A stretch of 64,000 bases of DNA, taken from positions 1 through 64,000 of the IMG/VR virus record IMGVR_UViG_3300005965_000002; one strand, 5' to 3'. The position numbers were made by a program, and so were the translations under genes. The notes under the pieces were generated by a model, which was not told where the DNA came from, searched no databases, and was given only the letters and a program-made list of their open reading frames with translations. Position 1 is the first letter of the stretch; every line of letters starts with the position of its first letter. Positions 30,808-64,000 of the stretch are shown here, piece by piece.

Positions 30808-30968
30808 TTTAATACTCTACTTTATCCGTCTCAAAGGATATACCAGTTTTTTTGACGATAACAGTTACCTGTATATGCTTTAAAGGGATTGGTAAAGGCG
30901 GTAAATAAATGTCTTTTCTATACGGATCATATCTTTTAATCGAAGGAACGAATGGTAACAGTTTTAAG

Positions 30969-31041: not shown

Positions 31042-31081
31042 TGATAGTCATTAATATACCTTTGTGATATATTTATTTTAA

Positions 31082-31393: not shown

Positions 31394-31661
31394 CTTTGAT
31401 CTCCTGAATAGTCTTCCAGTTAGGTTCGTTACCTTCTCTACAATGGTTCTCAATTTCTTCATATTTTCGTCCTCTAAGCAGGCAGTAGGCAATATGACTG
31501 TGGCGGTAGTCAGCCTTTAGAGAAAGAACCTCTGCTTGTTCTCTCCAAGCATTCCCGGTTCCTGACTCCCTTTGGATTGATCTAATCTTGTTTTTGAGTT
31601 CACGTAGACCTAAAGCCTTCTTCTTCAGCGTATTTTTCAGAATTGAATATGAGGTATGCAT
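31353..31661 (-). CDS. hypothetical protein upstream of the Pth2-like gene
   Basis: RHSHIAYCLLRGRKYEEIE; RBS lies inside a hairpin. Confidence 0.7.
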   Translation of the reverse strand: MHTSYSILKNTLKKKALGLRELKNKIRSIQRESGTGNAWREQAEVLSLKADYRHSHIAYCLLRGRKYEEIENHCREGNEPNWKTIQEIKDAYTAKDVCASEA

Positions 31662-31965
31662 TCCGCACTCCTTTAATTAAGTGAATAGTTAATAGATAGC
31701 ACTTAAAAAAGGAATGCTTTAAGGAGGCTTAAAAACTCGGAGGACCTATGTGAATCCGGAAACCTACACAGGTGAGAAAAAGTGGGTCATTTTATTTTCC
31801 TATTAAGATTTAATATTTAAATACCGATAATTTCATCATCGTAAAAATAGGTATCTTTTTCGTGACCACTCTTCATTTTATAGATGAAATAAGTAGCTAC
31901 TAATGCAAGAATACCCGATATAGCGATAATTTTTTTCATACTATGACTCTCAGATTAAAAGATTA

Positions 31966-32793: not shown

Positions 32794-33690
32794 TTTTTAA
32801 CTTTTGGGATAAGGTAAATTTCAGAAGTATCGTAAGATCCATCATCATTCTTGTTTAAGCGCCCATGATAGATTGGAATGTGTGGGCCTATCTTCCTGGC
32901 GGTATCCCGCGCCTCATTCAATGCTGTGTAGGGGCCTTCATATTTTTTGCCTTTTTCTACTTCTACGAAAAATCCTTGCATTTGTCCTCACTTGTTATAC
33001 CATACCCAACCTACGAAAATTACCTGGTCACCGTTATCAAGATTTACCAAAAATCTTTTTAATTCGTTATCACCATCACAGGGAAGAGTGCAGGTAGTAT
33101 AGCCATGGCCTAAAGAAGCTCTTTCAATATGAGAGAGTACTCGTATACCATTTAGCACAAACGATGCATCAAACTTGTATTCAAACATAGCAGAATCAAA
33201 GTTTGGCTTTCTGTACTGATCTACATCGTTTTTTACGATAATAGCAGTAGGTATCATCCAGAAGTATCTGTTGCCTATGATATAGGGGCACTCATAAATT
33301 ACTTTATCTCTGATCTTTGATAGATCAACATTAAGTCGTTCCGCTTCATGCCAGGGGTCTGGTCTGATTAAAGATATTAAACCTATTTTTTCAGATTTAA
33401 TAGATTCTAATTTATCGAAGTCATAGGTGTGGGAAACATACTCTGACCCATACAAAATATCTCCGTAATCTTCACCCTGAAAAGTCTTAGCGACTACTGG
33501 CTTAATCATGATTCCTCCGTACTTATTTCGTCTATTTCCTTTTGTATTTCCTTTTGTATTTCTTTCTTAGCTTTTTGTCTTTCGGTCTTCTTATTAAGAC
33601 TATCTAACTCTGCCTCCCACCAATTGATGTATCCTTTGGGAGGATGGTTATCTTCGTAGTTATGACTTTTTGGTTTACGCCCGTAAGGTT

Positions 33691-34161
33691 TCATTTTTCA
33701 CAGACAAATTCTAGTTTTGTCCCACCATCGTAAGGTACAGCTAGACCGGCTGTAATTAGCATTTCAGCCAAATTCTGACCATCAATAAGAACATCAGCTA
33801 AAATCCTAAAATATTTACCTCTTTGTATATTGGTAAGCTCAATTTTTTTAGCATTTGAAAGCTTATCTATGACGAAGGCTTTAGCTTCTTTAGCTTTGGC
33901 TTTTTCACAGGGGCGGCTTCCCCTTATCTCCGGTGCGTCTATTCCTTTTACACGTATAGATACTGTGTCGCCGATGAGGGGGTGAACATTATTGATATTA
34001 GCGTGAAAAGTATCGCCATCATAAACTTTAACGATGTTTTTCACCTTCAGGGATCCGTACGTCTTATCAGCAGCGTGAAGAGAATTAACTACGCAGAAAA
34101 ATAAAATCAATAAAACAAACAAGTTTTTGAAAATTTGATTGTAAAGGTTCGATCCAAACAT
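33691..34161 (-). CDS. thermonuclease (SNase-like), probably secreted
   Basis: VYDGDT, IRVKGIDAPE, GKYFRILA, GLA motifs; hydrophobic signal-like segment; start uncertain. Confidence 0.85.
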   Translation of the reverse strand: MFGSNLYNQIFKNLFVLLILFFCVVNSLHAADKTYGSLKVKNIVKVYDGDTFHANINNVHPLIGDTVSIRVKGIDAPEIRGSRPCEKAKAKEAKAFVIDKLSNAKKIELTNIQRGKYFRILADVLIDGQNLAEMLITAGLAVPYDGGTKLEFVCEK

Positions 34162-34938
34162 TGGGTGGTATCCTGTGTTAGAGCTATCCGTCCCAACCTC
34201 TATATCTTTGGGTGTAGACTCCATTTTACGCAGCTTTGGCGAATGTTTTGTACTGTTGCCAAGCATCCTCCCACCTCTGGGATTTGACAAGCGTACGGAA
34301 TGTCAGGATGTTCTGACCACCTTCACAGGACCAACGCATGCCGCTTCGCTGAGATTGCTGGTCATCTTCTCTACAAGCTCGGCGTTGAGCTGCGAAAAGT
34401 TGAAGTCGTGGCATAAATCTACCATTTTTTGTTTAAATGTACTGACAAAGCGATCGACTATTCGGCCAATAGATATCATCGGATCCTCCTGAATTTCCCT
34501 TTAACTTGTTGTTCAATAAGCAGTTAGGGAATACGATGGGGGATCCTTTTTTCCTGAATACATGCGTAAAAACGAGTCTACACCCAAATCTTTCCAAAGA
34601 TCTTTCGGCATTGTGACACTAAACTTTTCCATTAATTTGTTTAATTCAGTATACGGTGTAGATTTTATTTTGTATGGATCGTATGCTCTAAATGCTGTCC
34701 GGTTGGTAGTTGTAGCTGTTGTACGGCCTATAACAGACCCGTTTACAGCTAAATCGTTTTCATGGGAATTATATACTCCATGAGGTTTACCTACAGGTTT
34801 ACCAAGCCAGCACTCGTCAGTGCGTCCTATAGATAATTCTGAAGCTTTGAATATGTCATTATTTCTATTTGGTGGTAACATAGGCATATTATAATATACT
34901 CCACAGATAAAAGTATTTAAAGGAGAGAAATAAGAAAA

Positions 34939-35013
34939 TCGAGGTGCCCGGATTTGAACCGAGGACCCCCGCCTCCCAAAGACGGTGCTCTAGCCAAGCT
35001 GAGCTACACCTCG
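34939..35013 (-). tRNA. tRNA-Pro(TGG)
   Basis: Loop TTTGGGA; no CCA. Confidence 0.92.
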
Positions 35014-35255
35014 TTAGATTATGATTTTTAGAGCACTCACAACATTTTGGATGCGGTTGATGACAGTTGTCGTACTACTCCCGGCAAAAAGAAGACCTAC
35101 GGCGTTATTTTGACCGTTAAATACCACTGACCCACTATCGCCTCCTTGGCTCATAGGTCCTGCAATAAGCTGGTCAGTAAAAACAGCCACTTTATTGGCT
35201 CCGTAGCTTACTTGTACTGTAGCATCTATCTGCTGAATAGTACCTTCTGTGTACC
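35014..35255 (-). pseudogene. C-terminal fragment of a trypsin-like serine protease
   Basis: TGYTEG..., SQGGDSGS, VGLLFAG; N-terminus replaced by IS DNA. Confidence 0.75.
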
Positions 35256-35830
35256 CGGTAGACATCCCACAGAAGAGAGCTGTCGGTGGGATAGTGGATG
35301 TTCGACTCACACACCGTGCTGTCCACCCGCAGCCTCTCGGCGGTGATCTTGCCGCTGCGCTGAGCAGCATCCAGGACAATCGCATTGATCTTTTGCCATG
35401 TCGAAGCCTGGATATGCTTGAATGCCGTACACAGCTGGTTAAAGCTCATCACCTTGCCCATGCCGATGCGGGTGAAATTGAGCAAAAAATCGCTATCTGC
35501 GATACGAATCACCGTCTCGCGGTAAGGAAGGTCTTCTATAATCATAACAATACTCATCCGCAATACCTGTTCGCTGCTATAACTGGCTCCACGCCCCTTG
35601 CTCGAGCCACATCGGCGCAGGTCTTTATGAACGACATTCAGAATCTCTGGATGCTCGTCCAGGAAGCGGTCAATCGAATCGTATTTGGCTCGGTACTCAC
35701 GAATCACCTTCTGTTCACTGAATACATTGAAGGGAAAACATGGCTGTGCGTGAACTATTTTTCTCACTGGGATGCCCTCCGTTTTCTGTAAAACCCTTTT
35801 GGTTTTTTGATCAACAGAAAAATAGGATAA
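35255..35830 (-). mobile_element. truncated IS transposase (ISNCY/IS5-like), 5' part only
   Basis: Higher GC; GR....EQVLR...YRE, RVDSTVCESNIHYPTDSSLLWD; fused out of frame to the protease fragment. Confidence 0.8.
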
Positions 35831-35844
35831 GGCATCCCTTTTTG

Positions 35845-36852
35845 TTAACCCTTAGTGCTTTCTGAACAGAAACTAACTAATACTCTTTTGTTTTTTACTA
35901 TGATTCTGAAATACGGGCATTTTCCATTTATCGACAAATCTTTTCCATCATTACCTTTTCTAAATTTAACAATCTCAAATTGGTCAGGATTGAATTTGTG
36001 TAGGAACGTTATGGGGACACCCATATATCCATTATAATCGATTGGTATATCCTGTGTTTTATTGACATTTATCCCATCATAATTATCATACTTTGGATAT
36101 TCAGCTTCATTACCAAGATATTTCCTTTTTAGTTCAATGTCTTCATGACGTTTAAAAGTGTCCAAATTAGTTAGCCATAGACAATTATTTGGCGAAACTA
36201 TTCTATTTCCAGCATCATCTATGCGTGCTTCTGTTCCATAGAGATCATAGTGGTCAGGTACAATAAAACCAGAAACGCCTCTACCAAGACCTATTCCTAG
36301 CCAAGCATTGTTTTCCTTAATTAACTTAAAAATTTCCTTATACGTTATGGCATTAACATTCCCAATTATCAAAAATTGTTTATCATAGTTTACCAATTGA
36401 GCGACATACTCTCTGAATAGCGAAAAAGGAGGATTAGTAACAATAATATCTGATTGTTTCAAGAGTTCAATGCTTTCAGCACTTCTAAAGTCTCCATCTC
36501 CTTTGAAATAAACTATATCCGTTGTATCTGGTATCTTTTTCTCGCCCTCAGTTCCTGTATATGCATAGAAAAAACCATTTTCATCTTCTTGCGTATTAAA
36601 TAAATCTCTTGTTTGTTCCTTATAACATGACGCGATTACTTTTTTAAGGCCAAGTTCCTCAAAGTTTGAAGTAAAATAACGGAAGAAGTTGCTGATACGA
36701 GGGTCATCACAATTACAATAAACAACTTTATTCTTAAAATGACTCTTATAATGTTGTAATTCACTTTCTATATCCGCAAGCTGGGTGTAAAATTCATCAC
36801 TTTTCGATTTTTTTGCCTTTTGAAGTAATTTATTTGTTGCATTTCGTGCCAT
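35845..36852 (-). CDS. EcoRI-family adenine DNA methyltransferase
   Basis: AKKSKSDEFYT, VYCNCDDP, GDGDFRS.E, VTNPPFSLFREY, GVPITF. Confidence 0.9.
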   Translation of the reverse strand: MARNATNKLLQKAKKSKSDEFYTQLADIESELQHYKSHFKNKVVYCNCDDPRISNFFRYFTSNFEELGLKKVIASCYKEQTRDLFNTQEDENGFFYAYTGTEGEKKIPDTTDIVYFKGDGDFRSAESIELLKQSDIIVTNPPFSLFREYVAQLVNYDKQFLIIGNVNAITYKEIFKLIKENNAWLGIGLGRGVSGFIVPDHYDLYGTEARIDDAGNRIVSPNNCLWLTNLDTFKRHEDIELKRKYLGNEAEYPKYDNYDGINVNKTQDIPIDYNGYMGVPITFLHKFNPDQFEIVKFRKGNDGKDLSINGKCPYFRIIVKNKRVLVSFCSESTKG

Positions 36853-36861
36853 TAATTCACC

Positions 36862-37488
36862 TTAGTTGTTATTTGTTAATTGATTGAATATGTCGCTTCC
36901 CAATACTTTGAGCGAGGTCTTCGAAATTTCAATCATAACATCAAACATATCCTTAGTATCCCACCTTTCTCCGTTCCCCTGTGTATAAATAGATGTTGCT
37001 TGAAGCATAATTGTTTTATCAATATGCTTAACAAACTTATTCATACATAAATTGGTGTTGATGGGCATACCATAATTTGCTGATGTCAACCTATCTAGTC
37101 TATTTAGCATTCCTGAGTTATATTCAAGAGTTACAACTCTTCCGTCTGGCCTTTGAATTGAAATAGTTTCTGTTAAGAAATTTGAGCCTTCCAAAAACAG
37201 TACGTAAGGGAAATGAGATTCAGCTAGCATAAAGTTAGCTATTTCTGATATGTTTTTATGAGACCTTTCAATCGCATTTCCAGCGGCCATCAAGTCTTGG
37301 TTATTACCAGTGCCAACTAATTGACCATTTCTAATGTTTTCAATGTCTTTTCCCTGATGTTTGGCTTCTGAAACCAAAACTACTCTCCAATTGCCGTTGT
37401 CGTCTTTTACTTCAATAATTCCGCCATCAGGTTTAATACTAGAATTACCTAAATCTTTTCTCATTACTATGACTTGTTTGTAATTCAT
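36862..37488 (-). CDS. N-truncated EcoRI-like restriction endonuclease fused to a Pth2-like N-terminus
   Basis: KPDGG..EAKHQG..MAAGNAIERSHKN closely match EcoRI; first 14 aa MNYKQVIVMRKDLG are Pth2-like. Confidence 0.85.
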   Translation of the reverse strand: MNYKQVIVMRKDLGNSSIKPDGGIIEVKDDNGNWRVVLVSEAKHQGKDIENIRNGQLVGTGNNQDLMAAGNAIERSHKNISEIANFMLAESHFPYVLFLEGSNFLTETISIQRPDGRVVTLEYNSGMLNRLDRLTSANYGMPINTNLCMNKFVKHIDKTIMLQATSIYTQGNGERWDTKDMFDVMIEISKTSLKVLGSDIFNQLTNNN

Positions 37489-37743
37489 GCGTCTTCCATT
37501 TCCTGCTTTACCCGTTTATTCTTTTTCTTTACCTGTTTGCGGCACCCTTCAATAAACTCTTTGCTTACTTTTTTACTGGGCACTTTAACTAATTTAATTG
37601 TAAAAACGCCTTCACACTTAGGACAGTACATTGCTTTTGAAAACCAGCCGTTTGAGACCTCTTCAAGACCTGTCCCGCATTTGTTGCAGACTGCATTGGT
37701 AATAAAAGGACTTGCGTGTATTTCGAAGTTATCAAATTTCATA

Positions 37744-38310
37744 TCAACTCCTAAGTTCTCTTTCGCCTGAGCGGGATAAATAGTTTTTATCTGCTGGTGA
37801 ATCGTAAAACCAGCAGGGCCAGTGCTTTTTAAAGCTTTCAATTACTGCTTGGTTACAAGTAATCACTAAACTCCAAGGACGAAAGAGTACCATATCAAAC
37901 ATTACCCAGCCGGGCTGGAGGGTCACCGCGTGGAAATTGTATTGGCTCTGTTCGCTGTCGTGGGAGACAATGATATCTGTGTTTTTCTGTAGTCGGTCTA
38001 AGAGTTGCCATCTTAACTCGACATCATTGTCTACGAAAATCATATCCCACTTACCGGATAAGCGGGATGCATAATTTAAGACCTGATCGTGATCGGGTAA
38101 GTATAGCGAGTTAGGGTTGATTTTTTGAGAAGAATCAAACCATTGTTCATTCTGGGTTTCTATAGAGGTAAGTACGCAACCTCTCTCTACAAAATATCTC
38201 GTGCTAAAGTCTCCGGTACCGAACTCAAGTACTTCCTTTGGATTCACCGTATTGAACACACGATCCAAAACTGGTATATGACTCATAATCCCATCAAATT
38301 TAAATATCAT
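37744..38310 (-). CDS. methyltransferase-like protein
   Basis: VLEFGTGDFST, DMIFVD, VSHD. Confidence 0.65.
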   Translation of the reverse strand: MIFKFDGIMSHIPVLDRVFNTVNPKEVLEFGTGDFSTRYFVERGCVLTSIETQNEQWFDSSQKINPNSLYLPDHDQVLNYASRLSGKWDMIFVDNDVELRWQLLDRLQKNTDIIVSHDSEQSQYNFHAVTLQPGWVMFDMVLFRPWSLVITCNQAVIESFKKHWPCWFYDSPADKNYLSRSGERELRS

Positions 38311-38326
38311 ATTATCTCTCCAAAAA

Positions 38327-38404
38327 TGGTCGGGACGCCCGGATTTGAACCGGGGACCCCAAGTCCCCCAGACTTGTGCGCTGACCAGGCTGCGCCACGT
38401 CCCG
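38327..38404 (-). tRNA. tRNA-Pro(GGG)
   Basis: Loop CTGGGGG; CCA. Confidence 0.92.
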
Positions 38405-38418
38405 AAAAAAACTAGTAA

Positions 38419-38937
38419 TCAATTTTTAACGTTTCCTTTTTTAAACTCTACGTGATAGTTTGTAAACTGCTGCTCTGATCTGTTTTCCAAATTACTTAAT
38501 TCAGGGTGCTCGGATTTTCTATATTTACATTTTTTTATGTTTATAAATCCTAGAATCTTAGCTATATACTCTAATTCTTCAAAGGCAGGAAAATGAATGT
38601 GTCCGAATCTTTTTACATTGATTTCCTCTAAAATGCAAAATTCTCTATAACCATACCCTATATAAAGGAGCGTATCTATGGGTGGGAATGATGCCCGAAA
38701 AACACCGTTGGGTTTTAATATTCTATAGATCTCTGAAAGAAACTTCATCACGTCTATTTGCGATAAGTGCTACAATACATCTTGGCAGTATACGAAGGAA
38801 GCGGTACTATCTTTAAAGGGGTGTTGCTTTGTTATATCTGCTATAAGCTGCGTGTCCGGGTTGTCTGCGTCAAAGCGTAGGTCAACGTTTAGCCTCCCCT
38901 CTTTGTAATCGTTACCACTGCCGTAATGGATCTTCAT
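38419..38937 (-). pseudogene. type 11 methyltransferase with in-frame TAG at 38772-38770 (pseudogene or read-through)
   Basis: MKIHYGSG...NVD...DIT..PF.D...QDVL*HL...EIYRILKPNG. Confidence 0.75.
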
Positions 38938-40155
38938 AGTGAATTCTTTAATATTTATGGTACGCCTAATTTTTTATTTCCACTACTCTACCGCTGTCAT
39001 ACACGAGATCTTTTTTATCGAAAAGGCTTGCGTTCATCACACAGGAGGCATCCCACCCCTTAGAAGTGTCTTCTGCTTCTCCATATAGGTCTGAGGATGT
39101 TTTCCCGCAACAAACACAAACCCAAATTTTACCTTCCGGGGCTATCTTATTTTTGCTCACGAGACTGCTCCCATTCTTTTATAAATGCTATAGCTGTATA
39201 GTTGGTATCACATTTACGCATTAGTATACACTGCCCATTTTTTAATGTCACATTAAATGCGTTATTCTCATCGGATAGTGTAGATATAATATCAACGGCC
39301 ACTACCTGATTAAGCATAAAAGCACCTTTGGGATGTTTGATAATTTTTTCAGAGTTCATCAGTCTTCCCTGACTATGTCAAATCGTTCTATTTTGCTGAA
39401 ATCTTCCACAATGTCTTTTGAAAAAATAAGTCTCCAGGAACCATCCGGGAGTCCATCAAGATGCAGCATCTCAAGATCTGATTTTATAGAGGTAGCTTTA
39501 GATAGCTCCAATTCCTTATAAGACCCATCTTTCATAACAATTCGGATAGCACGCCTAATACTCATGCTACAGATCCTCTCGTGGTTGAAACTGCTTCATA
39601 AAGTGGACAACGTTTTTGTATTCCTCAGGTTTATCGCAGGAGACGTAGCCGCTGGTTTCCCTTTGTTTCGTTCCACTACACTCCGCATACAGCAAAGGTA
39701 TACCCGATTTTACTCGCACCCGCCGCTGTTTTTAGGATGTGCTTTACCCGTTAAGCTACAGCCACCATAAACTCTTGGTAAATTTTTTATTTGGGTATAG
39801 ATACTCATTGCTTTCCAGTAACTTTTTCCTTCATCGTCTTTATAACACTTAATAAGCTGAATCTTCTTATCAAGTAATTCTGAAAAGACTAAAGCCATTC
39901 CCAAATCAAAATGAGATCCTTTTGAATCTACATCCCAGAACACATGTATCTCATCAGCATCCTTCATCCCTATGTAATGGCCCATGACGATACTGTAGCC
40001 AGTATCGTCATTTTGATTCACTTTTTTGTAGGAATGAACATCATGTCCTTGGCTTTCAAGGTTAGAGATATACTCGTCTAATTCCTCTTTTTGCTCATCT
40101 GTCATTTTTCTTACGGGACAGAGAATGTAGATGTTCATTTTGTCTCCTTAAAAAA

Positions 40156-40235
40156 TGGAAGGGGTGCCCGGATTCGAACCGGGGAAAAATAACGGGACCA
40201 AAACCCGTCGTGTTAAGCCGCTTCACCACACCCCT
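40156..40235 (-). tRNA. tRNA-Gln(TTG)
   Basis: ACGGG-TTTTGGT-CCCGT; CCA. Confidence 0.88.
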
Positions 40236-40434
40236 CTAATTACCGAAACTAATACCTGATCGCTTGTACGGTTTCGTTATTGCCCAGTATATAAAGATAA
40301 ATCTTCTTTCGAACCAAAGAGTATACGGCCCATACATAGTACCGCCCTCTTCCGGATCGTACCGGGCAAAGGATTCTCCTTTGGTGTAGAATAGATTTAA
40401 ACCGAGTTTACCTATCCAAATAAACATGATAAAT

Positions 40435-40511
40435 TGGCTGGCGCGGCAGGGCTCGAACCTGCGACCTGGTGGTTAACAGCCACCCGCTACTGCCAACTGA
40501 GCTACGCGCCA
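40435..40511 (-). tRNA. tRNA-Asn(GTT)
   Basis: GGTGG-CTGTTAA-CCACC; CCA. Confidence 0.93.
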
Positions 40512-40596
40512 GTACTTGGTATTGAGTTTTTCAGAATTTCAAGAATACGCTTATCTTCATCGCGTACTATATCATTCATAGCTTTTATGGTATATG

Positions 40597-40648
40597 CTGA
40601 CGTACTCCCACGACTGAAGTCGTGGGCTTTCCCGCTCACTCTCGTAAA
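40597..40648 (-). mobile_element. 52-nt palindromic IS200/IS605-end-like element, copy 1
   Basis: Identical to 53619-53670; hairpin CCCACGAC-TTCA-GTCGTGGG. Confidence 0.75.
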
Positions 40649-40925
40649 TCCTGCCAGTGCTCAAGAGCCCAACGAGGAAGATACTTAGCGTAATTTTTTC
40701 TAAATTTTTTATTCAATCTTTTGTTGTTTAACCAACGCTTAGGTCTACGAACTTTTGCGTACCGTGCCATTTCCGGTAGAGTAATACTCGTAGGGATTTC
40801 TACAGCACCTTTTAGATCAAAAGACGCCTTAATCGTAAATTTTTTAGAGTTTTTTAAAATGCCTTTAACAGCCTTATCATTCATACAAGAATATACTCAT
40901 TAGAATAAGCATTTTAAAGTAAAAG

Positions 40926-41001
40926 TGGCTGGGGTGCCAGGATTTGAACCCGGGATCTTCTGGGCCAGAACCAGACGTTCTACCAACTGAACTACACCCC
41001 A
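40926..41001 (-). tRNA. tRNA-Gln(CTG)
   Basis: TCTGG-TTCTGGC-CCAGA; CCA. Confidence 0.92.
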
Positions 41002-41008
41002 GTAAAAA

Positions 41009-41081
41009 CTGGCAGGGTCGGGATCGAACCGACAGTCACCTGGGTAACAACCAGGCCGCTTGCCAATTTGCGTACCTGCCA
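41009..41081 (-). tRNA. tRNA-Asn(GTT), divergent second copy
   Basis: CCTGG-TTGTTAC-CCAGG; no CCA. Confidence 0.85.
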
Positions 41082-41106
41082 ATGAAATGTACTACCACCA
41101 AATAGA

Positions 41107-41312
41107 TATCAAAGAACAAATAAAAAACCCCGGAGAACTCTTGGTTCGCCGGGGTTTTTGATTCTCTTATTGAGCTTTAATCTAGGCCAAAAGAATCCCT
41201 CCCAACGAACCTTCTGTTCGCGGTTGTTGTGGATTAGGATTATTCTGGTTCATGATAAACATAATTTTTCCTCGTCAGTACTAATATACCCTTTTGCAGT
41301 AAAAAATACAAA
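41107..41312 (-). promoter_or_regulatory. attenuator 3: promoter TTGTAT-N17-TATATT, leader ORF 41262-41182, terminator 41159-41122, boxA-like 41118-41107
   Basis: Leader MFIMNQNNPNPQQPRTEGSLGGILLA; GGTTCGTTGGG pairs with CCCGGCGAACC. Confidence 0.88.
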
Positions 41313-48429: not shown

Positions 48430-48637
48430 AAAAAAGCCCTCCGGATTCCTCCAGAGGGCTTTGTATCTTAAAAATGCTTTCGCTTTTAGATAAAAAGCCT
48501 AAATTCCCCCCTGTGGCTACCTTTACGGCGCTTTACTACGACTTTTACCTTTTTCACGATCATCAGCATAATTCCACCTAATTTCTTCAGTTTTCTTCTC
48601 GTACTTATAATATACCACTTAGAACTCCTTATTTCAA
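48430..48637 (-). promoter_or_regulatory. attenuator 4: promoter TTGAAA-N17-TATATT, leader ORF 48569-48486, terminator 48462-48430
   Basis: Leader MLMIVKKVKVVVKRRKGSHRGEFRLFI; GGCTTTTTATCT pairs with AGATACAAAGCC, and CAGGGGG with CCCTCTG. Confidence 0.88.
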
Positions 48638-49512
48638 ACACTTCCTAAATATTTTTTTACTAAGTCTTTGTATACGGATAGGTACTTTAGGTATATCTCA
48701 TTAAAATACACTGCGTTAGGATAGGCCCAGTCCCACGATAAAAATTTATCACTATCTGGAGCGTTAGGTCCTGTAAAATGTACAATGCGTGCTGATTGGG
48801 GAGGAGACCCGACGTCACGCAGGGAGCCGAATGATACCTGATAATTATACAGATAGCTTTGGCTAATTGGTATGTTTAAGACGTTACACCATAGTGTTAT
48901 AATACTTTGATCGGCATACGCACAATACTTAATAAAATCCTTTGAGAGGTCACATAATAGATTATAATAAAAAGGTGTCCTGTACTTTTTGGGAATCATA
49001 AAGACACCAGCGTTTGCCATGCTATTAGGACCGTCTGGGTATTTAATACCGTATCTATTAAGTTTTCTTTGTAGTTTCTTATCGTGCCTTTTATCCTGGC
49101 CAAAGACCCTGACTATTGTATAGGGCTCGTGATTAGAAACTATAAAGAAATCGTGTTCTTCAAAAATATAGTCCAAATTTCTTTGTACAATAGTATCGCA
49201 ATCTAAATAAAGCACATTATCGTATTCATCAAAATCTGATGTCCATAGGTTGTACTTAAGGTAGACCCCTGGATGATTCACAGGCCCTAAACTCTTTTTT
49301 TGAGCCCTAAAATTTTCCCTGTAGAACATATCCTTTAACTCTACGTTTACTAGAGTTCTTAAAAGATTTCTAATCTCTGTGTTTTGTCCTTCGTAATAGA
49401 CTAAAATTTTTGGGTGTGATGGGTAGTTAGTTACTATACTACCCACCAGCGCCCTGGCATAATTCAAGTATCTATCATCGAAGTAAAAAGCTATTGCGTT
49501 TTTCTTAGACAT
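48634..49512 (-). CDS. glycosyltransferase family 8
   Basis: VLYLDCD, NAGV, ADQS, YNYQ, IVHFTG. Confidence 0.85.
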   Translation of the reverse strand: MSKKNAIAFYFDDRYLNYARALVGSIVTNYPSHPKILVYYEGQNTEIRNLLRTLVNVELKDMFYRENFRAQKKSLGPVNHPGVYLKYNLWTSDFDEYDNVLYLDCDTIVQRNLDYIFEEHDFFIVSNHEPYTIVRVFGQDKRHDKKLQRKLNRYGIKYPDGPNSMANAGVFMIPKKYRTPFYYNLLCDLSKDFIKYCAYADQSIITLWCNVLNIPISQSYLYNYQVSFGSLRDVGSPPQSARIVHFTGPNAPDSDKFLSWDWAYPNAVYFNEIYLKYLSVYKDLVKKYLGSV

Positions 49513-50080: not shown

Positions 50081-50620
50081 CTAGTTTGAATTATAGAATT
50101 TATCCCATGCTGATTTAATAGCTTTTATGTGTAGACTTACTGTTTGATCAGTAACACATAATTTTTTTGCTATCTCTTTACGTGTTCTCTTTATGATTAA
50201 TTCCTCGAAAATTTTTCTTCTTATAGGCGACACCTTTGGATCTTCGTAGTATAAAGAAACAAAAAGATTCCAATCTGATTTTAAATCCATTTCCTTTGCT
50301 AAATCAGAATCCTCCGAGTGTAGAGACTCATCGTATTCAACTTTTACAATATTAGCACCACGTTTTACGCTTTTTTCTTTGTTGGCCTCTTTTTGCGCGA
50401 ACCTTAACAGACATGTAGTGATGTAGGTGTTATACTTAGCAATCTTTTCATTGAACTTCTCCAATATTTCATTTTCTATCATATGAAGCACAAACTTGGA
50501 TATTAACTCATCGACTAAATCCGGATCCCTGACTCTGGTCTTCCAGATAAACATCTTCCTGAGGTCATCCAGGTTTTTTCTATAGAAGGTATCGTATGAT
50601 TTAGTTTCAATCATTTGCAA
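50081..50620 (-). CDS. ECF/sigma-like transcription factor
   Basis: Region-2-like KFNEKIAKYNTYI and C-terminal HTH RKEIAKKLCVTDQTVS. Confidence 0.65.
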   Translation of the reverse strand: MQMIETKSYDTFYRKNLDDLRKMFIWKTRVRDPDLVDELISKFVLHMIENEILEKFNEKIAKYNTYITTCLLRFAQKEANKEKSVKRGANIVKVEYDESLHSEDSDLAKEMDLKSDWNLFVSLYYEDPKVSPIRRKIFEELIIKRTRKEIAKKLCVTDQTVSLHIKAIKSAWDKFYNSN

Positions 50621-52752: not shown

Positions 52753-52828
52753 TGGCACGCCCGCCAGGACTCGAACCTGGAACCCTGGGATTAGAAATCC
52801 CATGCTATCTCCATTTAGCTACGGGCGC
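52753..52828 (-). tRNA. tRNA-Arg(TCT)
   Basis: TGGGA-TTTCTAA-TCCCA; CCA. Confidence 0.92.
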
Positions 52829-54593: not shown

Positions 54594-54666
54594 TAGCCCA
54601 GCAGGGACTCGAACCCCGAGACCAGGATTAGGAATCCTGTGCTTTGTCCTGTTAAGCGACTGGGCC
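54594..54666 (-). tRNA. tRNA-Arg(CCT)
   Basis: CAGGA-TTCCTAA-TCCTG; no CCA. Confidence 0.88.
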
Positions 54667-55482
54667 TTTTTTCTTTTTCAGTATAAACCCGATTATCCAG
54701 GTCATTACTCCGCTACTAATTATAAACCCGATAATGGTTTTCCAGTTGTTTTCCCAAAATCTGCCAGCTATAAAAGTAGGATTTACAGCCACTTTTATAG
54801 TGTCCGTATATGTTACGATATCATAGGTTTCATCCGAGAATCCTTCTCTTTTCAAGATGCATACTATTTTCATTTTTAATATATTTGTGCCACCGCTTAC
54901 AGGAGTAATCCCCCATTTCCATACGGTAGGCTTATCAAATTTTCGTAACTGAGTGGATGAGCTATAAGTGGTATCAATGCGGAACCCGTCACCAGATAAT
55001 TCAGCTTTCATTGTCTGGCTTACATCGATAATTTTTAGAGTATATTTTTCTCCTAAACCTTCAGTTAGTGCCTCAGAAATTTTATTATCGATTCTGAGCT
55101 TAACTTGATACTCTTTTCCCATTTTAATTGTATCTGGTACCTCGTAAGCTATTGCTCCAGAGGTAAGTTGAGACTGAAGGACCCAGGCGGCATCTCTATG
55201 AGAAAAATCCTCTCCGGCTGCTGCTGGAGAGGATCCTTCAATCTGTATAGTTCTTAAATTGATACGATCTAATTGTTTGGTTTCTTCTTCCCAGCTTGAA
55301 GGAGCTGGGGGAGGCATCCCAGCCCAATAGTCTTCTTCGTACTCATAGGTATCGGGGGAGGGTGTCATCTCTTGATAATCTGGTGAGATTACCGGAGGGG
55401 GTGCTGATGTATCATCTTTAAAAGTTTTTTTACCTCCACAAGAAACAATAGTAGCCAATAAGATTAAAAACATCCACTTCAT
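54652..55482 (-). CDS. putative lipoprotein with C-terminal transmembrane segment
   Basis: Lipobox-like IVSC; hydrophobic C-terminus followed by KKKK. Confidence 0.65.
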   Translation of the reverse strand: MKWMFLILLATIVSCGGKKTFKDDTSAPPPVISPDYQEMTPSPDTYEYEEDYWAGMPPPAPSSWEEETKQLDRINLRTIQIEGSSPAAAGEDFSHRDAAWVLQSQLTSGAIAYEVPDTIKMGKEYQVKLRIDNKISEALTEGLGEKYTLKIIDVSQTMKAELSGDGFRIDTTYSSSTQLRKFDKPTVWKWGITPVSGGTNILKMKIVCILKREGFSDETYDIVTYTDTIKVAVNPTFIAGRFWENNWKTIIGFIISSGVMTWIIGFILKKKKGPVA

Positions 55483-55496
55483 AATTACTCCTTTAA

Positions 55497-55568
55497 AGCC
55501 GGTGAAGGGACTCGGACCCCCAACCTACGCATTACGGGTGCGTTGCTCTACCGTTGAGCTACACCGGC
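55497..55568 (-). tRNA. tRNA-Thr(CGT), with C33
   Basis: ACGCA-CCCGTAA-TGCGT; no CCA. Confidence 0.85.
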
Positions 55569-56269
55569 TAGTATCCTAATTCAGATGCTGCTTGAACAAT
55601 TGGATCTGGCATCTTGATCTGCGTATAGGATGTCTTATTTTTATATACCTGGAGTTTCTCTATTTTCTCCCCCACAAAATCAGAGATTCTTTTTAATTCG
55701 TGATCCTGGTTTTCTATAAAATCTTCCATTTTTACCACTATCGATCTTTCTGGGTAAGGAACAGATTTTATAATGTCGTATTGAAGCTTCCAGCTCCATA
55801 AGCTTATATTTGCGTTTTTTAATCCACCAAACGCTCCAAAATGATTTAACAGCTTATCGCTATAGTGAGGGGCATTTCTCATTGGATTGCGAAACCAGAG
55901 TACATAGTAAAACTCAGGATATAGCCTAGTAAGCCAGGGATAGATAAAAGTTGTTTCTGGAAGCTTCCACCCTTTTTTTGGAGATTTATCGAGTAGAATG
56001 TCATGCAGATACCGGCGAATATCCTCGGCATCTTTAGCAGTGCAGCCTTCTATTGCTGGTTGTAGATTATAGTGATTGCCATCAAATTTAATTTGACTGA
56101 TAAACCTTTTGGCAATATCATACATTAAAGCATAGGGTTCCTTATCATAGCTTACATTCCTAAACTGAGGGGAACCCATAAAAAATCCGCTACTAGAAAA
56201 AGTTTTTGCTATTAATCTAGAAGCAGAAGATCCACGACCAATGATTGTTACAATCTTAGGACTCATCAC
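55568..56269 (-). CDS. sulfotransferase-family protein
   Basis: IIGRGSSASR, GWKLPET, FRNP, VKMEDF. Confidence 0.7.
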   Translation of the reverse strand: MMSPKIVTIIGRGSSASRLIAKTFSSSGFFMGSPQFRNVSYDKEPYALMYDIAKRFISQIKFDGNHYNLQPAIEGCTAKDAEDIRRYLHDILLDKSPKKGWKLPETTFIYPWLTRLYPEFYYVLWFRNPMRNAPHYSDKLLNHFGAFGGLKNANISLWSWKLQYDIIKSVPYPERSIVVKMEDFIENQDHELKRISDFVGEKIEKLQVYKNKTSYTQIKMPDPIVQAASELGY

Positions 56270-56489
56270 CTTCCTCTACTTCGTTACAGGCTATGCTTGC
56301 GTTTGCCCACATGATCGCTTCGCGTAGCTTTTCTATCGCTTTGTTAGTTTCCTCGCCTTCGGGGCAAAGCTTGACAATCTTTTTCGCTAGTCTTTTTCCT
56401 GCAGTCCTGAGAGTTTCATAACGATCGGGTTGGTCTCCACCCGGTCTGTGGTAGCTAAAAATGTTTTCGATTTGGTCTTTTGTAATCAT
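56256..56489 (-). CDS. Acb2/Tad1-like small helical protein
   Basis: FSYH.P..Q..RY..LR...CP...AIEKLREAIMWANASIA; start at ATG 56489. Confidence 0.65.
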   Translation of the reverse strand: MITKDQIENIFSYHRPGGDQPDRYETLRTAGKRLAKKIVKLCPEGEETNKAIEKLREAIMWANASIACNEVEEGDES

Positions 56490-56509
56490 CTTATCTTCTC
56501 CATAAAAAT

Positions 56510-56584
56510 TGGAGCAGGAGACGAGACTCGAACTCGCAACAATCACCTTGGAAGGGTGGGGCTCTACCATTGAGCTACTCCTGC
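56510..56584 (-). tRNA. tRNA-Gly(TCC)
   Basis: Loop CTTCCAA; U73; CCA. Confidence 0.92.
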
Positions 56585-57508: not shown

Positions 57509-57922
57509 ATGCATAGAATATCAGAATATTTAGACTCTCTTTCTAATATATTAGAGAGCAAAGGATTTTTAAAGCAGGCTGAGCATATTGATATGCTTAC
57601 TAACACAGTAGATGGGTTATGGCTCTGCTCATGCTGTCAGAAGCCCACGGTAAATAGTATAGAAGATCGTTACATGGTAAACGATGATATATGGAGAGAG
57701 CTGGGTTTCCCGGGCCAAGTAGATGGCATTCCTGATGACTACTTTTTATGTTGGAGCTGTCTTATTATGGCAGTTTCGAAAAAGTTAGGTAGAGGGCTTT
57801 CATCTGCCGATTTTGCTCAATATATGCAGTACCCTATAAACGTAAATAATCCGAATATAATTGATCTTATGAGGGGAGAAATGGACCAGGTAGGACTCGA
57901 ACCTACGACTGCTCGATTATGA
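57509..57922 (+). CDS. hypothetical protein with the shared N-terminal motif
   Basis: RBS AAGGAG; LDSLSNILESKGFLKQAEHIDML. Confidence 0.7.
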   Translation: MHRISEYLDSLSNILESKGFLKQAEHIDMLTNTVDGLWLCSCCQKPTVNSIEDRYMVNDDIWRELGFPGQVDGIPDDYFLCWSCLIMAVSKKLGRGLSSADFAQYMQYPINVNNPNIIDLMRGEMDQVGLEPTTARL

Positions 57923-57955
57923 GTCGAGAACTCTAACCAACTGAGTTACTGGTCC
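57882..57955 (-). tRNA. tRNA with CAT anticodon (Ile2 likely, Met possible)
   Basis: CTCGA-CTCATAA-TCGAG; no CCA; its leader contains ATA twice. Confidence 0.88.
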
Positions 57956-58569: not shown

Positions 58570-58644
58570 TGGAGCAGGGGACGGGAGTCGAACCCGCAAC
58601 AACCACCTTGGCAAGGTGGAGCTCTACCGTTGAGCTACCCCTGC
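58570..58644 (-). tRNA. tRNA-Gly(GCC)
   Basis: CCACC-TTGCCAA-GGTGG; CCA. Confidence 0.93.
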
Positions 58645-58645: not shown

Positions 58646-59104
58646 TTATCTGAGATTATAGAAGTAAAGTAGACCAGCCCACCCCGAGGGTAAACACCTA
58701 GGTGCTTCTTCTAACTCTTCTCCATATTTTACCGCCATTTCAAGGAAGTACTTAGCATGGAAAAAGGCCTCTACCATAGGTCTCGTGTGTTTAAGCCAAT
58801 TTTTGTTATGCTTGTCTTGGAAGGTTTTGCCTGAAGCACCTTCCTTAAGTATCTCTTCTAAAAAACAGTTAGGCTTTACTCCCTCAGGTGCTAAGCTGTT
58901 AAGCTTTTCAATAATCTCTTTGGTAATCCCTTGGATGTAATAAACCTTAAAAGATTGGTGGTAGAACCGGTATATATGGTCTTCATAAAACCAATGACCG
59001 TTTATCTTCTCTAACAGTTCTTTAAGCTCCTTGTGATTACGCTTTATATTTTCTAAAAGCGCGTTAGCTTGCTTATGCATGTTCTCAAAATAATTATGAT
59101 CCAT
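58646..59104 (-). CDS. conserved hypothetical protein
   Basis: YRFYHQSFKVY...EAFFHAKYFL...LPSGWA. Confidence 0.7.
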   Translation of the reverse strand: MDHNYFENMHKQANALLENIKRNHKELKELLEKINGHWFYEDHIYRFYHQSFKVYYIQGITKEIIEKLNSLAPEGVKPNCFLEEILKEGASGKTFQDKHNKNWLKHTRPMVEAFFHAKYFLEMAVKYGEELEEAPRCLPSGWAGLLYFYNLR

Positions 59105-59162
59105 AAAAACCCTCCTTCTTTAATATAACTATTTACAGAAAGGTTTTTTGAAAATAATAAAA

Positions 59163-59234
59163 TAGCCCGTACCGGAGTCGAACCGATGCGTCCTGGCTGA
59201 GAACCAGGTATCCTGACCACTAGATGAACGGGCC
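59163..59234 (-). tRNA. tRNA-Glu(CTC)
   Basis: CCTGG-TTCTCAG-CCAGG; no CCA. Confidence 0.9.
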
Positions 59235-59239
59235 ATTAA

Positions 59240-59313
59240 TAGAGGTAGGGGGATTCGAACCCCCGATCTACGCCGTGAAAGGGCGTTGAGTTTGACCACT
59301 ACTCTATACCTCC
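59240..59313 (-). tRNA. tRNA-Glu(TTC)
   Basis: ACGCC-CTTTCAC-GGCGT; no CCA. Confidence 0.9.
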
Positions 59314-59318
59314 ATATA

Positions 59319-59400
59319 TGGAGCTGGGAGAGGGTGTTTCACCCACACAGAGCTCATTCCCCTGAGCAAGGGGTCCGCTGCCTATTTCTGGAGTCCCAGC
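59319..59400 (-). ncRNA. 82-nt tRNA-like RNA ending UCCA
   Basis: GCTGGGA/TCCCAGC-TCCA; non-canonical T loop TGAAACA; CCCCT-TGCTC-AGGGG arm. Confidence 0.65.
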
Positions 59401-59592
59401 ATAGTAACTAATCTAAGGTGCGTTCTTATGCTTATTCCTGTCAAAGAGCTTCGGCTTCCACTGAGTGCAGTGATCTGCGCACCTAACGTAGATAGCCTGT
59501 TTTTTGGCCGTGCACACACGATAGCCCTGTCTTATGGATCTACACCCATTAGCACAGTTGTAACAGCTTTCGTCATGTATTTTAGTGGCCAT

Positions 59593-59784
59593 AAAAAAAA
59601 CCCTGTCAGTTTTAGTCCTGACAGGGTTTTATTCGACTTATGCAATAGATACCCCATCAGGACATTATAGTACCCTCGCCTTCTCCTTCTCTTCCTTCTA
59701 TCCTGATGGTAGTCGTAGCAATCATAATTTTTCCTTAAATTGGTTCGTTATCTTTAATATACCAATTAACGACCGAAAATTCAA
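59593..59784 (-). promoter_or_regulatory. attenuator 5: promoter TTGAAT-N17-TATATT, leader ORF 59725-59657, terminator 59630-59593 (boxA-like at 59450-59439)
   Basis: Leader MIATTTIRIEGREGEGEGTIMS; GTCCTGATGGGGT pairs over 13 bp with ACCCTGTCAGGAC. Confidence 0.9.
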
Positions 59785-59787
59785 ATA

Positions 59788-60210
59788 CTAAATTACAACT
59801 CTACCATTTTCCCAATAACCAAGTTTTCCCACGACATCAAAAGGCTCTATTTGGGAAAAATTTAAATGCTTAGTATCGACAGCTTTACCCCCGGCCCCTA
59901 AAGACATAGTTATATGAGGAGTAGCCGGGTTTCTATAGAGATCCTTTAATGATATTTTCTCACCACCAGCTACAAGTATTATGTTTGGTATTTTTACCTC
60001 AAACCCGTGATTTTTATCGTTACTACCCTCACCAACAACTTTTATAGGAATTTCTTTTCCTATTAGTTCTTTCGGTAGCTTATCTTCTTTATTGGGGTTG
60101 AAGTTAAAAGTTACATGCAAATCCTCTATAGGTTTATCAAGGGATGTGCTTACTTTATCCCGTAGCAGGTCGTCAAAAGGACCTTCGAAAAATACGCCTG
60201 AGTAGTACAT
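59788..60210 (-). CDS. 2H phosphoesterase-like protein
   Basis: Two HxT motifs (LHVT, PHIT). Confidence 0.65.
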   Translation of the reverse strand: MYYSGVFFEGPFDDLLRDKVSTSLDKPIEDLHVTFNFNPNKEDKLPKELIGKEIPIKVVGEGSNDKNHGFEVKIPNIILVAGGEKISLKDLYRNPATPHITMSLGAGGKAVDTKHLNFSQIEPFDVVGKLGYWENGRVVI

Positions 60211-61975: not shown

Positions 61976-64000
61976 TTAACCTTGCCATTTTTGAACTATA
62001 GGTATCCTTCGACCGATACCGAAAGCTTTTTCGTGTATCTTTAAGGTTATAGGTGCCTGATTTCTTTTAAATTCGTTTCTTCTAACCATACGACCAATCT
62101 GGTGGTAGTCGCTTGCACTCATTTGATTTTGTACCCGCAGTATCTCTGCCCAGTCTTCCCTATATGCTTCTCTTCCTTCAATAAATACCTTTAGTCTCGC
62201 ATCTAGAAGAGGATAAGGGGGCAAATTATCAGTATCCTCCTGTCCGGGAGCTAGCTCAGCGGAAGGAGCCTTATTAATGATAGACTCCGGTATTAATTCT
62301 TTATTATGAAATTCATTATAGTACCTGGCAAGCTCATAGACTTCCATCTTATAAAGATCACTTAAAGGGGCCAGGCCCCCATTCATGTCCCCGTATATTG
62401 TGCAATTATGCGTTTTTACGCCATTTACTGTGTATTCATGGTCTTTTTCTACTGTGAAATCGAACATTTCAACTTCTGTTTCCACAGTTTCTAATTTTTT
62501 AATAGCGGCGTAGTATGTCTTACTCTTAATTCTATCTTCCAAAGCAACCGTGATATCACTTTTATTTTTAATTGTATCAAGAAATTTTTTAAGAATACTT
62601 CTTCCAATCCACTTACTATTTTTATTTAAGTGCCTTCGAATAGTCCCATTTACCTTCCAATGTGTGTTGTCCTTGATGTGTGATAATTCACAGTGTGTTA
62701 TAGGAACAACATCATAGCTGGTTTTTATTTTTTTTGTGTTTTTTGTGTTATTATATAGTCTATTAGCTATACTTTTCTTCAGGATTTTAAAATTTAACAA
62801 TTTTTCTGATTCTATTGCCGGTATATACACTTCGTGTAAGTTTTTCCTGGACCTAATATAGGAAACTACCCCCAAATTCAACAAAATTAGATGTAACTTT
62901 TCTACTAATTTATAGCTAACACTATGGTATAGGATTTCTGACGTATTTTTGTTACCGTTGCTAGTACTATCTAAAAAAACACCTTCAATGAAAGGTTTTA
63001 CAAGATTTAGCGGGGCTCTCATAATGCACGCCGGTACATCTTTATTATGGGAACCATGTTCAATTCCTAAATGTCTTAAAAAACTGTTAAACTGAACACT
63101 ACATATTTCTATAAAAAAGCAACCTCTTTGGTCTTTTTTTGTAACTTTATACGAGCTTTCTTTTAGCCTTATGCTCTTAAAAAACATTACACAGAAATCA
63201 GAAACATACTTTTTAGAAGTACGTATTCTATAGATACTATCATTTATCCCGGAATAAGAGCCGTCAGCAACACAGATACCTATAAATTTAGATAGATTTT
63301 CATTCAAGTGAGATGGAAAATTAATATCTTGGGATATATAGTCAAATTCTTTTTTTTTGTAAGAAAACGTTATGTCGGTACTTCTGCCCCATATGTTTTC
63401 ACCAAAACTTACTATAGACATGTCTCCTACTTTTAGATTTTTAGCCTCTATAAATTCTTCTTTTCCATTTTTGTGTATCTTTATTTTGTGGTCTTCCGAT
63501 ATCTTTATTATATCCCCAAGTATGTTAGTAATTTTGATAAATCTATTTTTAACATTCCTAAATGAGTGCGTAACAGGCATGTCCTTGATAGAATAGGAAT
63601 TTTTTTCGTCAAAAACGCTACGAGCGCTAATTATGCCATTATCCGTAAATATGTAACTATCTCCATGGACACAATAACCCACGGACATCTCACTTTTGTT
63701 TCCTGTGGAAACTAGTAGATACCCAAATTGGTTAGAAAAAGCCATCAAAAGGAGCCCTCTTATACGGGCTTGCATGTTTTGCCTAGTCAAATCTGCGTCT
63801 GGAAGGTCGCCGACAGCGAAAAGAAAATCAGTGAAAACTTTTTCAAATATCCCTTTGATAGGTAGATTCTTTAGCTCTACTCCCAAGTTACTGCATAGCT
63901 TCTCAGAGTCCGTCACACTTCCTATACTAGAATACTCTGATGGCATTGTTACCGCAAAAACTTTGTCCGGACCAATAGCATCAGCGGCCATAGCTATTGC
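61976..64000 (-). CDS. nadE: NAD+ synthetase (5' end outside window) containing an intein
   Basis: MPS.YS, NMQARIRG, TGNKSE..VGY|CTIYGD, DLYK, KAPSAEL..GQ.D, EFKR.QAP. Confidence 0.92.
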   Translation of the reverse strand, partial: AIAMAADAIGPDKVFAVTMPSEYSSIGSVTDSEKLCSNLGVELKNLPIKGIFEKVFTDFLFAVGDLPDADLTRQNMQARIRGLLLMAFSNQFGYLLVSTGNKSEMSVGYCVHGDSYIFTDNGIISARSVFDEKNSYSIKDMPVTHSFRNVKNRFIKITNILGDIIKISEDHKIKIHKNGKEEFIEAKNLKVGDMSIVSFGENIWGRSTDITFSYKKKEFDYISQDINFPSHLNENLSKFIGICVADGSYSGINDSIYRIRTSKKYVSDFCVMFFKSIRLKESSYKVTKKDQRGCFFIEICSVQFNSFLRHLGIEHGSHNKDVPACIMRAPLNLVKPFIEGVFLDSTSNGNKNTSEILYHSVSYKLVEKLHLILLNLGVVSYIRSRKNLHEVYIPAIESEKLLNFKILKKSIANRLYNNTKNTKKIKTSYDVVPITHCELSHIKDNTHWKVNGTIRRHLNKNSKWIGRSILKKFLDTIKNKSDITVALEDRIKSKTYYAAIKKLETVETEVEMFDFTVEKDHEYTVNGVKTHNCTIYGDMNGGLAPLSDLYKMEVYELARYYNEFHNKELIPESIINKAPSAELAPGQEDTDNLPPYPLLDARLKVFIEGREAYREDWAEILRVQNQMSASDYHQIGRMVRRNEFKRNQAPITLKIHEKAFGIGRRIPIVQKWQG
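62405..63673 (-). mobile_element. 423-aa intein with LAGLIDADG endonuclease in NadE
   Basis: Starts CVHGDS, ends FDFTV..DHEY.VNG..THN followed by Cys; IGICVADG and FIEGVFLDS blocks. Confidence 0.93.

Follow-up and report, generated by a model that had tools for sequence, protein, structure and literature searches.

The window analysed here comprises the first 64,000 nucleotides (64 kb) of a single 258,580-base virus contig (IMGVR_UViG_3300005965_000002; 38.6% GC), which was assembled from a hypersaline-lake metagenome and is estimated by CheckV to be 55% complete. All 37 tRNA genes of the contig lie in this window, on the minus strand, between positions 2056 and 59314. At the upstream end of this tRNA region, 59785-59593 (minus strand) holds a sigma-70-like promoter found by consensus scan, a Shine-Dalgarno (SD) site, a 22-codon open reading frame (ORF), a strand that can act as an antiterminator and contains the stop codon of this frame, and a strong intrinsic terminator. 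These elements precede a block of eight tRNA genes:

59755-59785, minus strand: dedicated promoter, TTTGAAT, 15 bases, GGTATATTA (-35 TTGAAT at 59784-59779, -10 TATATT at 59761-59756)
59732-59736, minus strand: SD site AAGGA, 6 bases before the leader ATG
59657-59725, minus strand: leader ORF, 22 codons plus TGA (MIATTTIRIEGREGEGEGTIMS); codons 8-18 at 59704-59672
59699-59709, minus strand: region 1 (CCATCAGGATA, leader codons 6-9), which can pair over 11 bp with 59664-59654 (possible anti-antiterminator)
59651-59664, minus strand: region 2, the antiterminator strand, containing the stop codon TGA (59659-59657)
59593-59630, minus strand: intrinsic terminator (5' arm 59630-59618, overlapping region 3 at 59627-59615; loop 59617-59610; 3' arm 59609-59597; T-run 59600-59593)
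59413-59592, minus strand: first ORF after the terminator (59 aa, Cys-rich, no family match), the ATG of which directly follows the T-run; whether it is a real gene is uncertain
59239-59314, minus strand: tRNA-Glu (TTC); leader codon GAA x3
59162-59235, minus strand: tRNA-Glu (CTC); leader codon GAG
58570-58644, minus strand: tRNA-Gly (GCC); leader codons GGC, GGT
57882-57955, minus strand: tRNA with anticodon CAT, probably tRNA-Ile2 (which needs lysidine at C34); leader codon ATA x2
56510-56584, minus strand: tRNA-Gly (TCC); leader codon GGA x2
55496-55569, minus strand: tRNA-Thr (CGT); leader codon ACG
54594-54666, minus strand: tRNA-Arg (CCT); leader codon AGG
52753-52828, minus strand: tRNA-Arg (TCT); leader codon AGA; last tRNA before the next attenuator

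The leader region upstream of the eight-tRNA block

The initial annotation described this locus as an attenuator in which leader codons match eight of eight tRNAs and in which the stop codon sits inside a 13-bp antiterminator strand, and we found this description to be correct in every point we could check. Thirteen of the 21 sense codons are read by the eight downstream tRNAs, all eight tRNAs are represented, and codons 8-18 (AGG, ATA, GAA, GGA, AGA, GAA, GGA, GAA, GGC, GAG and GGT) are eleven consecutive cognate codons. The codons ATT, GCT, ACT x2, ACC, ATC and TCC are not cognate, and ACG lies upstream of region 1. To explore whether this match could have arisen by chance, we compared the leader with the codon usage of the phage. 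Against a background of 20.5% cognate codons, 13 of 21 corresponds to a binomial P of 4e-5, coverage of 8/8 tRNAs has P = 8e-4 by simulation, and both together occurred 0 times in 200,000 simulations. Of 881 small ORFs in all six frames of the contig, only this one matches as well.

We next analysed the RNA structures that the region could adopt. The region folds better than all 200 shuffled sequences (z = -3.6), and the terminator consists of a 13-bp GC-rich stem (59630-59597, -20 to -23 kcal/mol) followed by eight T. In constrained folds, the strand 59663-59651, which contains the stop codon, can pair over 13 bp with the 5' arm of the terminator at 59627-59615, whereas in the minimum free energy fold region 2 pairs over 11 bp with region 1 inside the leader. 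No Rfam family, including curated leader families and the T-box, matched the window at gathering score, and only sub-threshold, terminator-driven hits at E <= 10 were obtained in 59300-59800.

These sub-threshold hits, to sRNA and terminator-type families overlapping the hairpin, together with the purine-rich nature of the tract 59704-59672, raise the possibility that the element is a plain terminator or small RNA that only happens to read as matching codons. We consider this very unlikely, given that the joint probability was below 5e-6 for this leader alone and that a promoter followed about 150 bases later by a strong terminator has no simple use except regulation.

Five modules and their tRNA blocks

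Strikingly, the same architecture recurs five times in the contig. Five strong minus-strand terminators lie directly upstream of tRNA blocks, with T-runs at 14480, 24086, 41127, 48435 and 59600, and each is preceded by a short ORF and by the motif TTTGWAW-N15-GGTATATTA, which occurs exactly five times in 258,580 bases and only in front of the five leaders. The four sister modules are:

48433-48638, minus strand: sister attenuator 4 (promoter 48638-48608, leader 48569-48486 with a Val/Lys/Arg run, terminator 48462-48433), preceding Lys-TTT, Lys-CTT, Arg-ACG, Val-TAC and Arg-CCG
41123-41312, minus strand: sister attenuator 3 (promoter 41312-41282, leader 41262-41182 with an Asn/Gln/Pro run and stop TAG, terminator 41159-41123), preceding Asn, Gln-CTG, Asn, Gln-TTG, Pro-GGG, Pro-TGG and Sup-CTA
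24085-24305, minus strand: sister attenuator 2 (promoter 24305-24275, leader 24263-24147 with a Ser-AGY/Phe/Asp run, terminator 24126-24085), preceding Phe, Asp, Asp and Ser-GCT
14473-14716, minus strand: sister attenuator 1 (promoter 14716-14686, leader 14656-14540, terminator 14515-14473), preceding 13 tRNAs (Cys, Leu x3, Tyr, Ala x3, Trp, His, Thr x2, Ser-GGA), all with a cognate codon in the leader

To address the question of whether each leader is specific for its own block, we compiled a leader-versus-block codon matrix. The diagonal is 0.59, 0.30, 0.40, 0.42 and 0.62, off-diagonal values are at most 0.29, and the true assignment ranks 1 of 120 permutations. Binomial P values against phage codon usage run from 1e-2 to 4e-5 per leader. 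In total, 36 of 37 tRNAs have a cognate codon in their own leader, and only CGG for Arg-CCG is missing. Importantly, the match is at the level of synonymous codons and not of amino acids: Arg is AGG/AGA in leader 5, the leader at 59725-59657 (tRNAs CCT, TCT), but CGC/CGT in the run of leader 4 (tRNA ACG), and Ser is AGC/AGT in leader 2 (tRNA GCT) but TCC in leader 1 (tRNA GGA). Of note, the five leaders have unrelated base composition but follow the same codon-tRNA rule, which is further evidence against a coincidental purine-rich tract.

Having found this correspondence, we modelled a ribosome whose A site sits on each codon in turn, with everything up to 13 bases ahead of it made unavailable and the 3' arm of the terminator treated as not yet made. 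In all five modules, the antiterminator forms for every position up to the end of the cognate run and disappears within one to three codons after it; in module 5 it is lost once the A site passes codon 18-20. This is the arrangement expected of a working attenuator. However, in equilibrium folds without a ribosome and without the 3' arm of the terminator, pairing of regions 2 and 3 beats that of regions 1 and 2, so that termination on an untranslated leader would depend on the order of co-transcriptional folding.

We then searched for relatives, using a conserved 152-aa protein (58646-59104) as a handle. This protein, for which we found no family in Pfam or PHROGs and only weak Atlas leads, is often encoded by the first gene after such modules in relatives. 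The phage contig G001 (67% identity in this protein) has four modules, the leaders of which match differently partitioned blocks (Thr/Ser/His/Thr/Ala; Cys/Leu x5/Tyr; Asp/CAT/CAT/Ile-GAT/Phe/Ser; Glu/Glu). The contig G004 has a single 39-codon leader that contains all twenty amino acids, in front of at least 21 tRNA genes, and contigs L022, L037 and L048 add further modules. In addition, a DNA pattern search of viral contigs for the conserved core of regions 2 and 3 gave nine matches, of which seven were chance, one was G001 and one, G005, was a true homologue. Notably, G005 has a GC content of 61% and carries homologues of modules 5, 4 and 3 in the same order. G005 has Val-GAC, Arg-CCG and Gly-CCC tRNAs, the first and third of which are lacking from the window contig, whose leader 4 has no CGG for its own Arg-CCG tRNA, and the G005 leaders carry GTC/GTT x4, CGG and GGG x2. 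Over eleven leader/block pairs, the true assignment beats 200,000 permutations (P <= 5e-6). On the other hand, we found no such modules in the tRNA clusters of the high-GC relatives L013-L015, and a search for relatives through the upstream 140-aa protein gave none. No near-identical phage was detected among GenBank phages, where only a 39-base chance hit was obtained. Contigs of related strains cover the region at about 90% identity, and the only indel is a T-run that is one T shorter, but this comparison gave no usable pattern inside the leader.

Alignment of five homologues of module 5 showed that 96.8% of cells in the terminator are paired, with three compensatory pairs. The antiterminator, with its conserved core CCTGAYRGG, is 86.9% paired, against at most 45% when the partners are slid, but most of its pairs never vary, so that covariation is weak and the shuffle control is not significant. 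For the helix between regions 1 and 2, 74% of cells are paired, against at most 41.5% when slid; it comprises 9 bp in L048 with one compensatory change but, taken column by column, is not kept in L022 and G001.

Decoding identity of the CAT tRNA

The initial annotation took the two ATA codons of the leader to suggest that the CAT tRNA is lysidine-modified Ile2. We find this inference likely but unproven, and the leader alone is weak evidence, since ATG also occurs once inside it (codon 21) and ATA is frequent in this phage, such that two ATA in 21 codons is only a mild excess. Considering that ARAGORN calls this tRNA Met, we were wondering whether it might instead be an elongator tRNA-Met, in which case the ATA codons would just be common Ile codons read by a host tRNA. 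It is the only CAT tRNA in the contig, and no Ile-GAT gene is present. The tRNA is elongator-type, with a paired G1-C72 and an anticodon stem (CUCGA/UCGAG) that lacks the three G-C pairs of initiators, and it has C4:G69, C5:G68, U12:A23, C29:G41, A37, A38 and A73. E. coli TilS relies on 4:69 and 5:68, whereas Burkholderia TilS relies on 3:70 and 4:69 (PMC11947777). The positions used by the E. coli enzyme are the same in the E. coli gene annotated tRNA-Ile(CAT) but differ in the elongator Met gene metT (U4:A69 and A5:U68), while A3:U70 of the phage tRNA differs from G3:C70 of Burkholderia. Among complete E. coli genomes, the best matches are genes annotated tRNA-Ile, and the one we examined has anticodon CAT. 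Pairwise identity, used as a proxy for isotype scores, is 0.74 to this E. coli Ile2 gene against 0.68 to E. coli Met, which is not far below, and 0.62 to T5 tRNA-Ile2 against 0.40 to T5 tRNA-Met.

The leaders point in the same direction. ATA is the commonest Ile codon in the phage, at 32 per 1000, and is present in all five homologous leaders of this type, including that of G005, whose block holds a homologous CAT tRNA with C4:G69 and C5:G68. In contrast, the G001 block with a Met-like CAT tRNA (G4:C69, G5:C68) and an Ile-GAT tRNA has a leader with three internal ATG, ATC/ATT and no ATA. Moreover, if the phage tRNA were Met, ATA would be the only non-cognate codon in an otherwise unbroken 11-codon run. 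No TilS gene (PF01171) was found in the contig, which is estimated to be 55% complete. Taken together, we consider Ile2 the likely identity and elongator Met doubtful, although TilS determinants differ between bacteria and modification of the tRNA by a host TilS remains an inference.

A ribosome-mediated attenuation model for phage tRNA genes

Collectively, these data strongly support the interpretation that the element is a ribosome-mediated (leader-peptide) transcription attenuator at the head of a phage tRNA operon, and we hold this reading with fairly high confidence, although it rests on sequence, with no RNA run listed for this DNA among public data, and all mechanistic steps beyond the sequence anatomy are inferred. 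In the proposed model, host RNA polymerase starts at the dedicated promoter and transcribes a leader of roughly 150 bases, while a ribosome translates the 22-codon frame close behind the polymerase. If every codon is decoded quickly, the ribosome reaches the last codons and the TGA, where it covers region 2, so that the terminator hairpin forms and transcription stops at the T-run before the tRNA genes. If the ribosome stalls anywhere in codons 8-18 because the matching aminoacyl-tRNA is scarce, region 2 stays free and pairs with the 5' arm of the terminator, and the polymerase reads on into the genes for exactly those tRNAs. The predicted result is negative feedback, in which the phage makes Glu, Gly, Arg(AGR), Thr(ACG) and ATA-reading tRNAs when the infected cell cannot decode those codons fast enough and stops when it can, with the four sister modules doing the same for the other 29 tRNAs. 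Within this reading, the CAT tRNA is the ATA decoder. Of note, the block spans 7 kb and contains protein genes, -10-like elements and a terminator-like hairpin at about 55207 inside an ORF, and control of all eight tRNAs by this one site is not shown.

The interspersed protein genes led us to question whether the leader is a classical amino-acid sensor that reports uncharged tRNA and mainly regulates these genes, with the match to the tRNA genes being secondary. The sensor cannot by itself tell low tRNA abundance from low charging, and protein genes, including that of the conserved 152-aa protein, lie in the same blocks. However, we regard this possibility as unlikely, since the match follows anticodons rather than amino acids and changes with tRNA gain or loss in relatives. 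In addition, the interspersed proteins (Ogg-like glycosylase, sulfotransferase-like, Acb2/Tad1-like, histidine phosphatase) have no link to Glu, Gly, Arg, Thr or Ile supply, and more tRNA does not relieve amino-acid starvation. Alternatively, the mechanism may be the same but the trigger may be host defence rather than codon-usage mismatch, the modules switching on phage tRNA genes when host anticodon nucleases or other tRNA-depleting defences destroy the host's copies, which phage tRNAs are probably able to replace. The logic of the circuit fits any cause of tRNA depletion, and an anti-defence-type protein (Acb2/Tad1 hairpin domain, E = 6e-14) is encoded inside the block at 56256-56570. Nevertheless, nothing in the sequence distinguishes this trigger from simple supply and demand, all 37 tRNAs are covered and not only known nuclease targets, and we consider host defence as the specific trigger improbable.

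The layout resembles the leader-peptide attenuators of enterobacterial amino-acid operons (trpL, hisL, leuL, thrL, ilvL, pheL), which have a promoter-proximal short ORF with a run of regulatory codons, mutually exclusive hairpins, a stop codon placed so that a finishing ribosome masks region 2, and an intrinsic terminator before the regulated genes; leaders sensing several amino acids are already known (thr, ilv). Here, by contrast, the inferred targets are tRNA genes and not biosynthetic enzymes, one leader samples up to 13 tRNA species, the match is to anticodons, the modules are phage-borne and occur as a set of five, and there is no sequence or Rfam relationship. The pheM leader of E. coli pheST likewise controls a component of the translation apparatus (phenylalanyl-tRNA synthetase) according to how well its own codons are decoded, but it controls a synthetase for one amino acid rather than tRNAs for many codons at once. 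T-box riboswitches also sense tRNA status and choose between terminator and antiterminator upstream of translation-related genes, but they bind uncharged tRNA directly through a specifier codon and a conserved T-box sequence, without a ribosome; neither a T-box match nor such a fold is present here, and a translated ORF is inferred to take its place. As in the tRNA gene clusters of phage T5, and probably of T4, many tRNA genes lie on one strand, interspersed with small ORFs and driven by host-type promoters, and T5 also carries a tRNA-Ile2 (CAU). In the T5 tRNA region, however, we found annotated promoters and small ORFs but no promoter-proximal leader-plus-terminator modules. Leader-peptide attenuation itself is well known, but in a literature search of limited scope we found no report of it on tRNA genes in phages or cells, and this would be the first such case known to us.

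It is, in our view, somewhat more likely than not that the whole 59-kb tRNA region is a set of five codon-resolved feedback loops, each using the translating ribosome to measure the capacity of the cell to decode the very codons whose tRNAs it controls, such that the phage would supply only the tRNAs that its current host lacks or that host defences have destroyed. This logic may extend to stop-codon suppression, since the leader whose block contains the amber suppressor tRNA ends in TAG, and its homologue in the 61% GC phage, whose block contains an ochre suppressor tRNA, ends in TAA. The modules are compact (about 190 bases) and would represent natural codon-specific sensors of tRNA availability. 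If this holds, leader codons could provide an independent, sequence-only clue to the identity of ambiguous tRNAs (CAT as Ile2 or Met; suppressors) in uncultured phages. Why large phages carry many tRNA genes, and how these are expressed, are open questions, and a demand-sensing attenuator would show that phage tRNA supply is actively tuned to the decoding capacity of the infected cell.

Genes and RNA elements in and near the tRNA region

Inspection of the region surrounding the attenuators revealed the following features within the window:

58646-59104, minus strand: gene for a conserved 152-aa protein of unknown function
56256-56570, minus strand: ORF with an Acb2/Tad1 hairpin domain
55175-55207, minus strand: terminator-like hairpin
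5727-5817, minus strand: tRNA-Ala (CGC)
2944-3239 and 12433-12677, minus strand: two group I introns
61976-63991, minus strand: 671-aa ORF running off the window end

The conserved 152-aa protein has no Pfam or PHROGs family but at least 386 relatives in metagenome contigs, and its gene is repeatedly the first or second one after one of these attenuators. Notably, the ORF at 56256-56570 has an Acb2/Tad1 hairpin domain (E = 6e-14), the type found in anti-CBASS and anti-Thoeris sponge proteins. This ORF lies inside tRNA block 5, the block behind the fifth attenuator, and its annotated start overlaps tRNA-Gly (TCC). The terminator-like hairpin (-19.5 kcal/mol plus a T-run) lies inside the 276-aa ORF, between tRNA-Thr (CGT) and tRNA-Arg (CCT), and would split block 5 if it is active. 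Of note, tRNA-Ala (CGC) is 91 bases long according to ARAGORN and scores only 31 bits with the Rfam tRNA model, just above the cut-off; it may carry an insertion or be degenerate. The two group I introns that lie within the tRNA region score 79 and 67 bits with Rfam. Finally, judged by eye from the translation only, the 671-aa ORF begins and ends like a PP-loop NAD synthetase, with a long unrelated middle part that may be an intein.

Leader sequences and a phage T5 ORF

We next considered leaders, and one ORF of phage T5, at the following positions:

Window 24147-24263: leader 2
L001 9690-9726, L001 17290-17323 and L006 4405-4440: three of the four leaders of the related phage contig G001
L108 15618-15893: phage T5 gene T5.072

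Leader 2 is rich in ATC/ATT and ATG, but its block has no Ile or Met tRNA. Strikingly, it matches the homologous G001 block (Asp, CAT, CAT, Ile-GAT, Phe, Ser) better (0.54) than its own (0.30); either tRNA genes were lost while the leader kept their codons, or those genes lie in the missing part of the genome. In G001 itself, three of the four leaders start 6-8 bases after a TATAAT/TATATT -10 box and have no Shine-Dalgarno site, and are probably translated from leaderless mRNAs. In phage T5, the ORF just upstream of the Tyr-Glu-Trp-Phe tRNA genes contains the stretch WEGWEGEIEWLYFY, which is rich in exactly those four residues; however, no terminator follows it, and this may be coincidence.

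Stop codons and suppressor tRNAs

Stop codons may also take part in the correspondence between leaders and tRNAs. The relevant positions are:

Window 41182-41184 (leader 3 stop) and 30968-41082, with L109 1953-2033 and 8023-8098: leader 3 and its block, and their homologue in the 61% GC contig G005
Window 31052-31060, minus strand: sixth copy of the -10-type element
Contig 50081-50614, minus strand, and 245569-250020, plus strand: two long frames, each interrupted by a single in-frame TAG

The two interrupted frames, comprising 177 codons plus 191 more and 183 codons plus 1299 more, respectively, are candidates for suppressor-dependent read-through. TAG ends 29 of 192 long ORFs, so the code is not globally reassigned. 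The sixth copy of the -10-type element, GGTATATTA, lacks the upstream TTTGWAW half and sits about 10 bases before the suppressor tRNA gene (31041), raising the possibility that the suppressor has its own promoter. Leader 3 ends in TAG (followed by four codons and then TAA), and its block contains the amber suppressor tRNA (anticodon CTA), while its homologue in G005 ends in TAA and the corresponding block ends with an ochre suppressor tRNA (anticodon TTA). The stop codon may act as the sensor codon for the suppressor; the chance probability of the two matches together is roughly 0.04.
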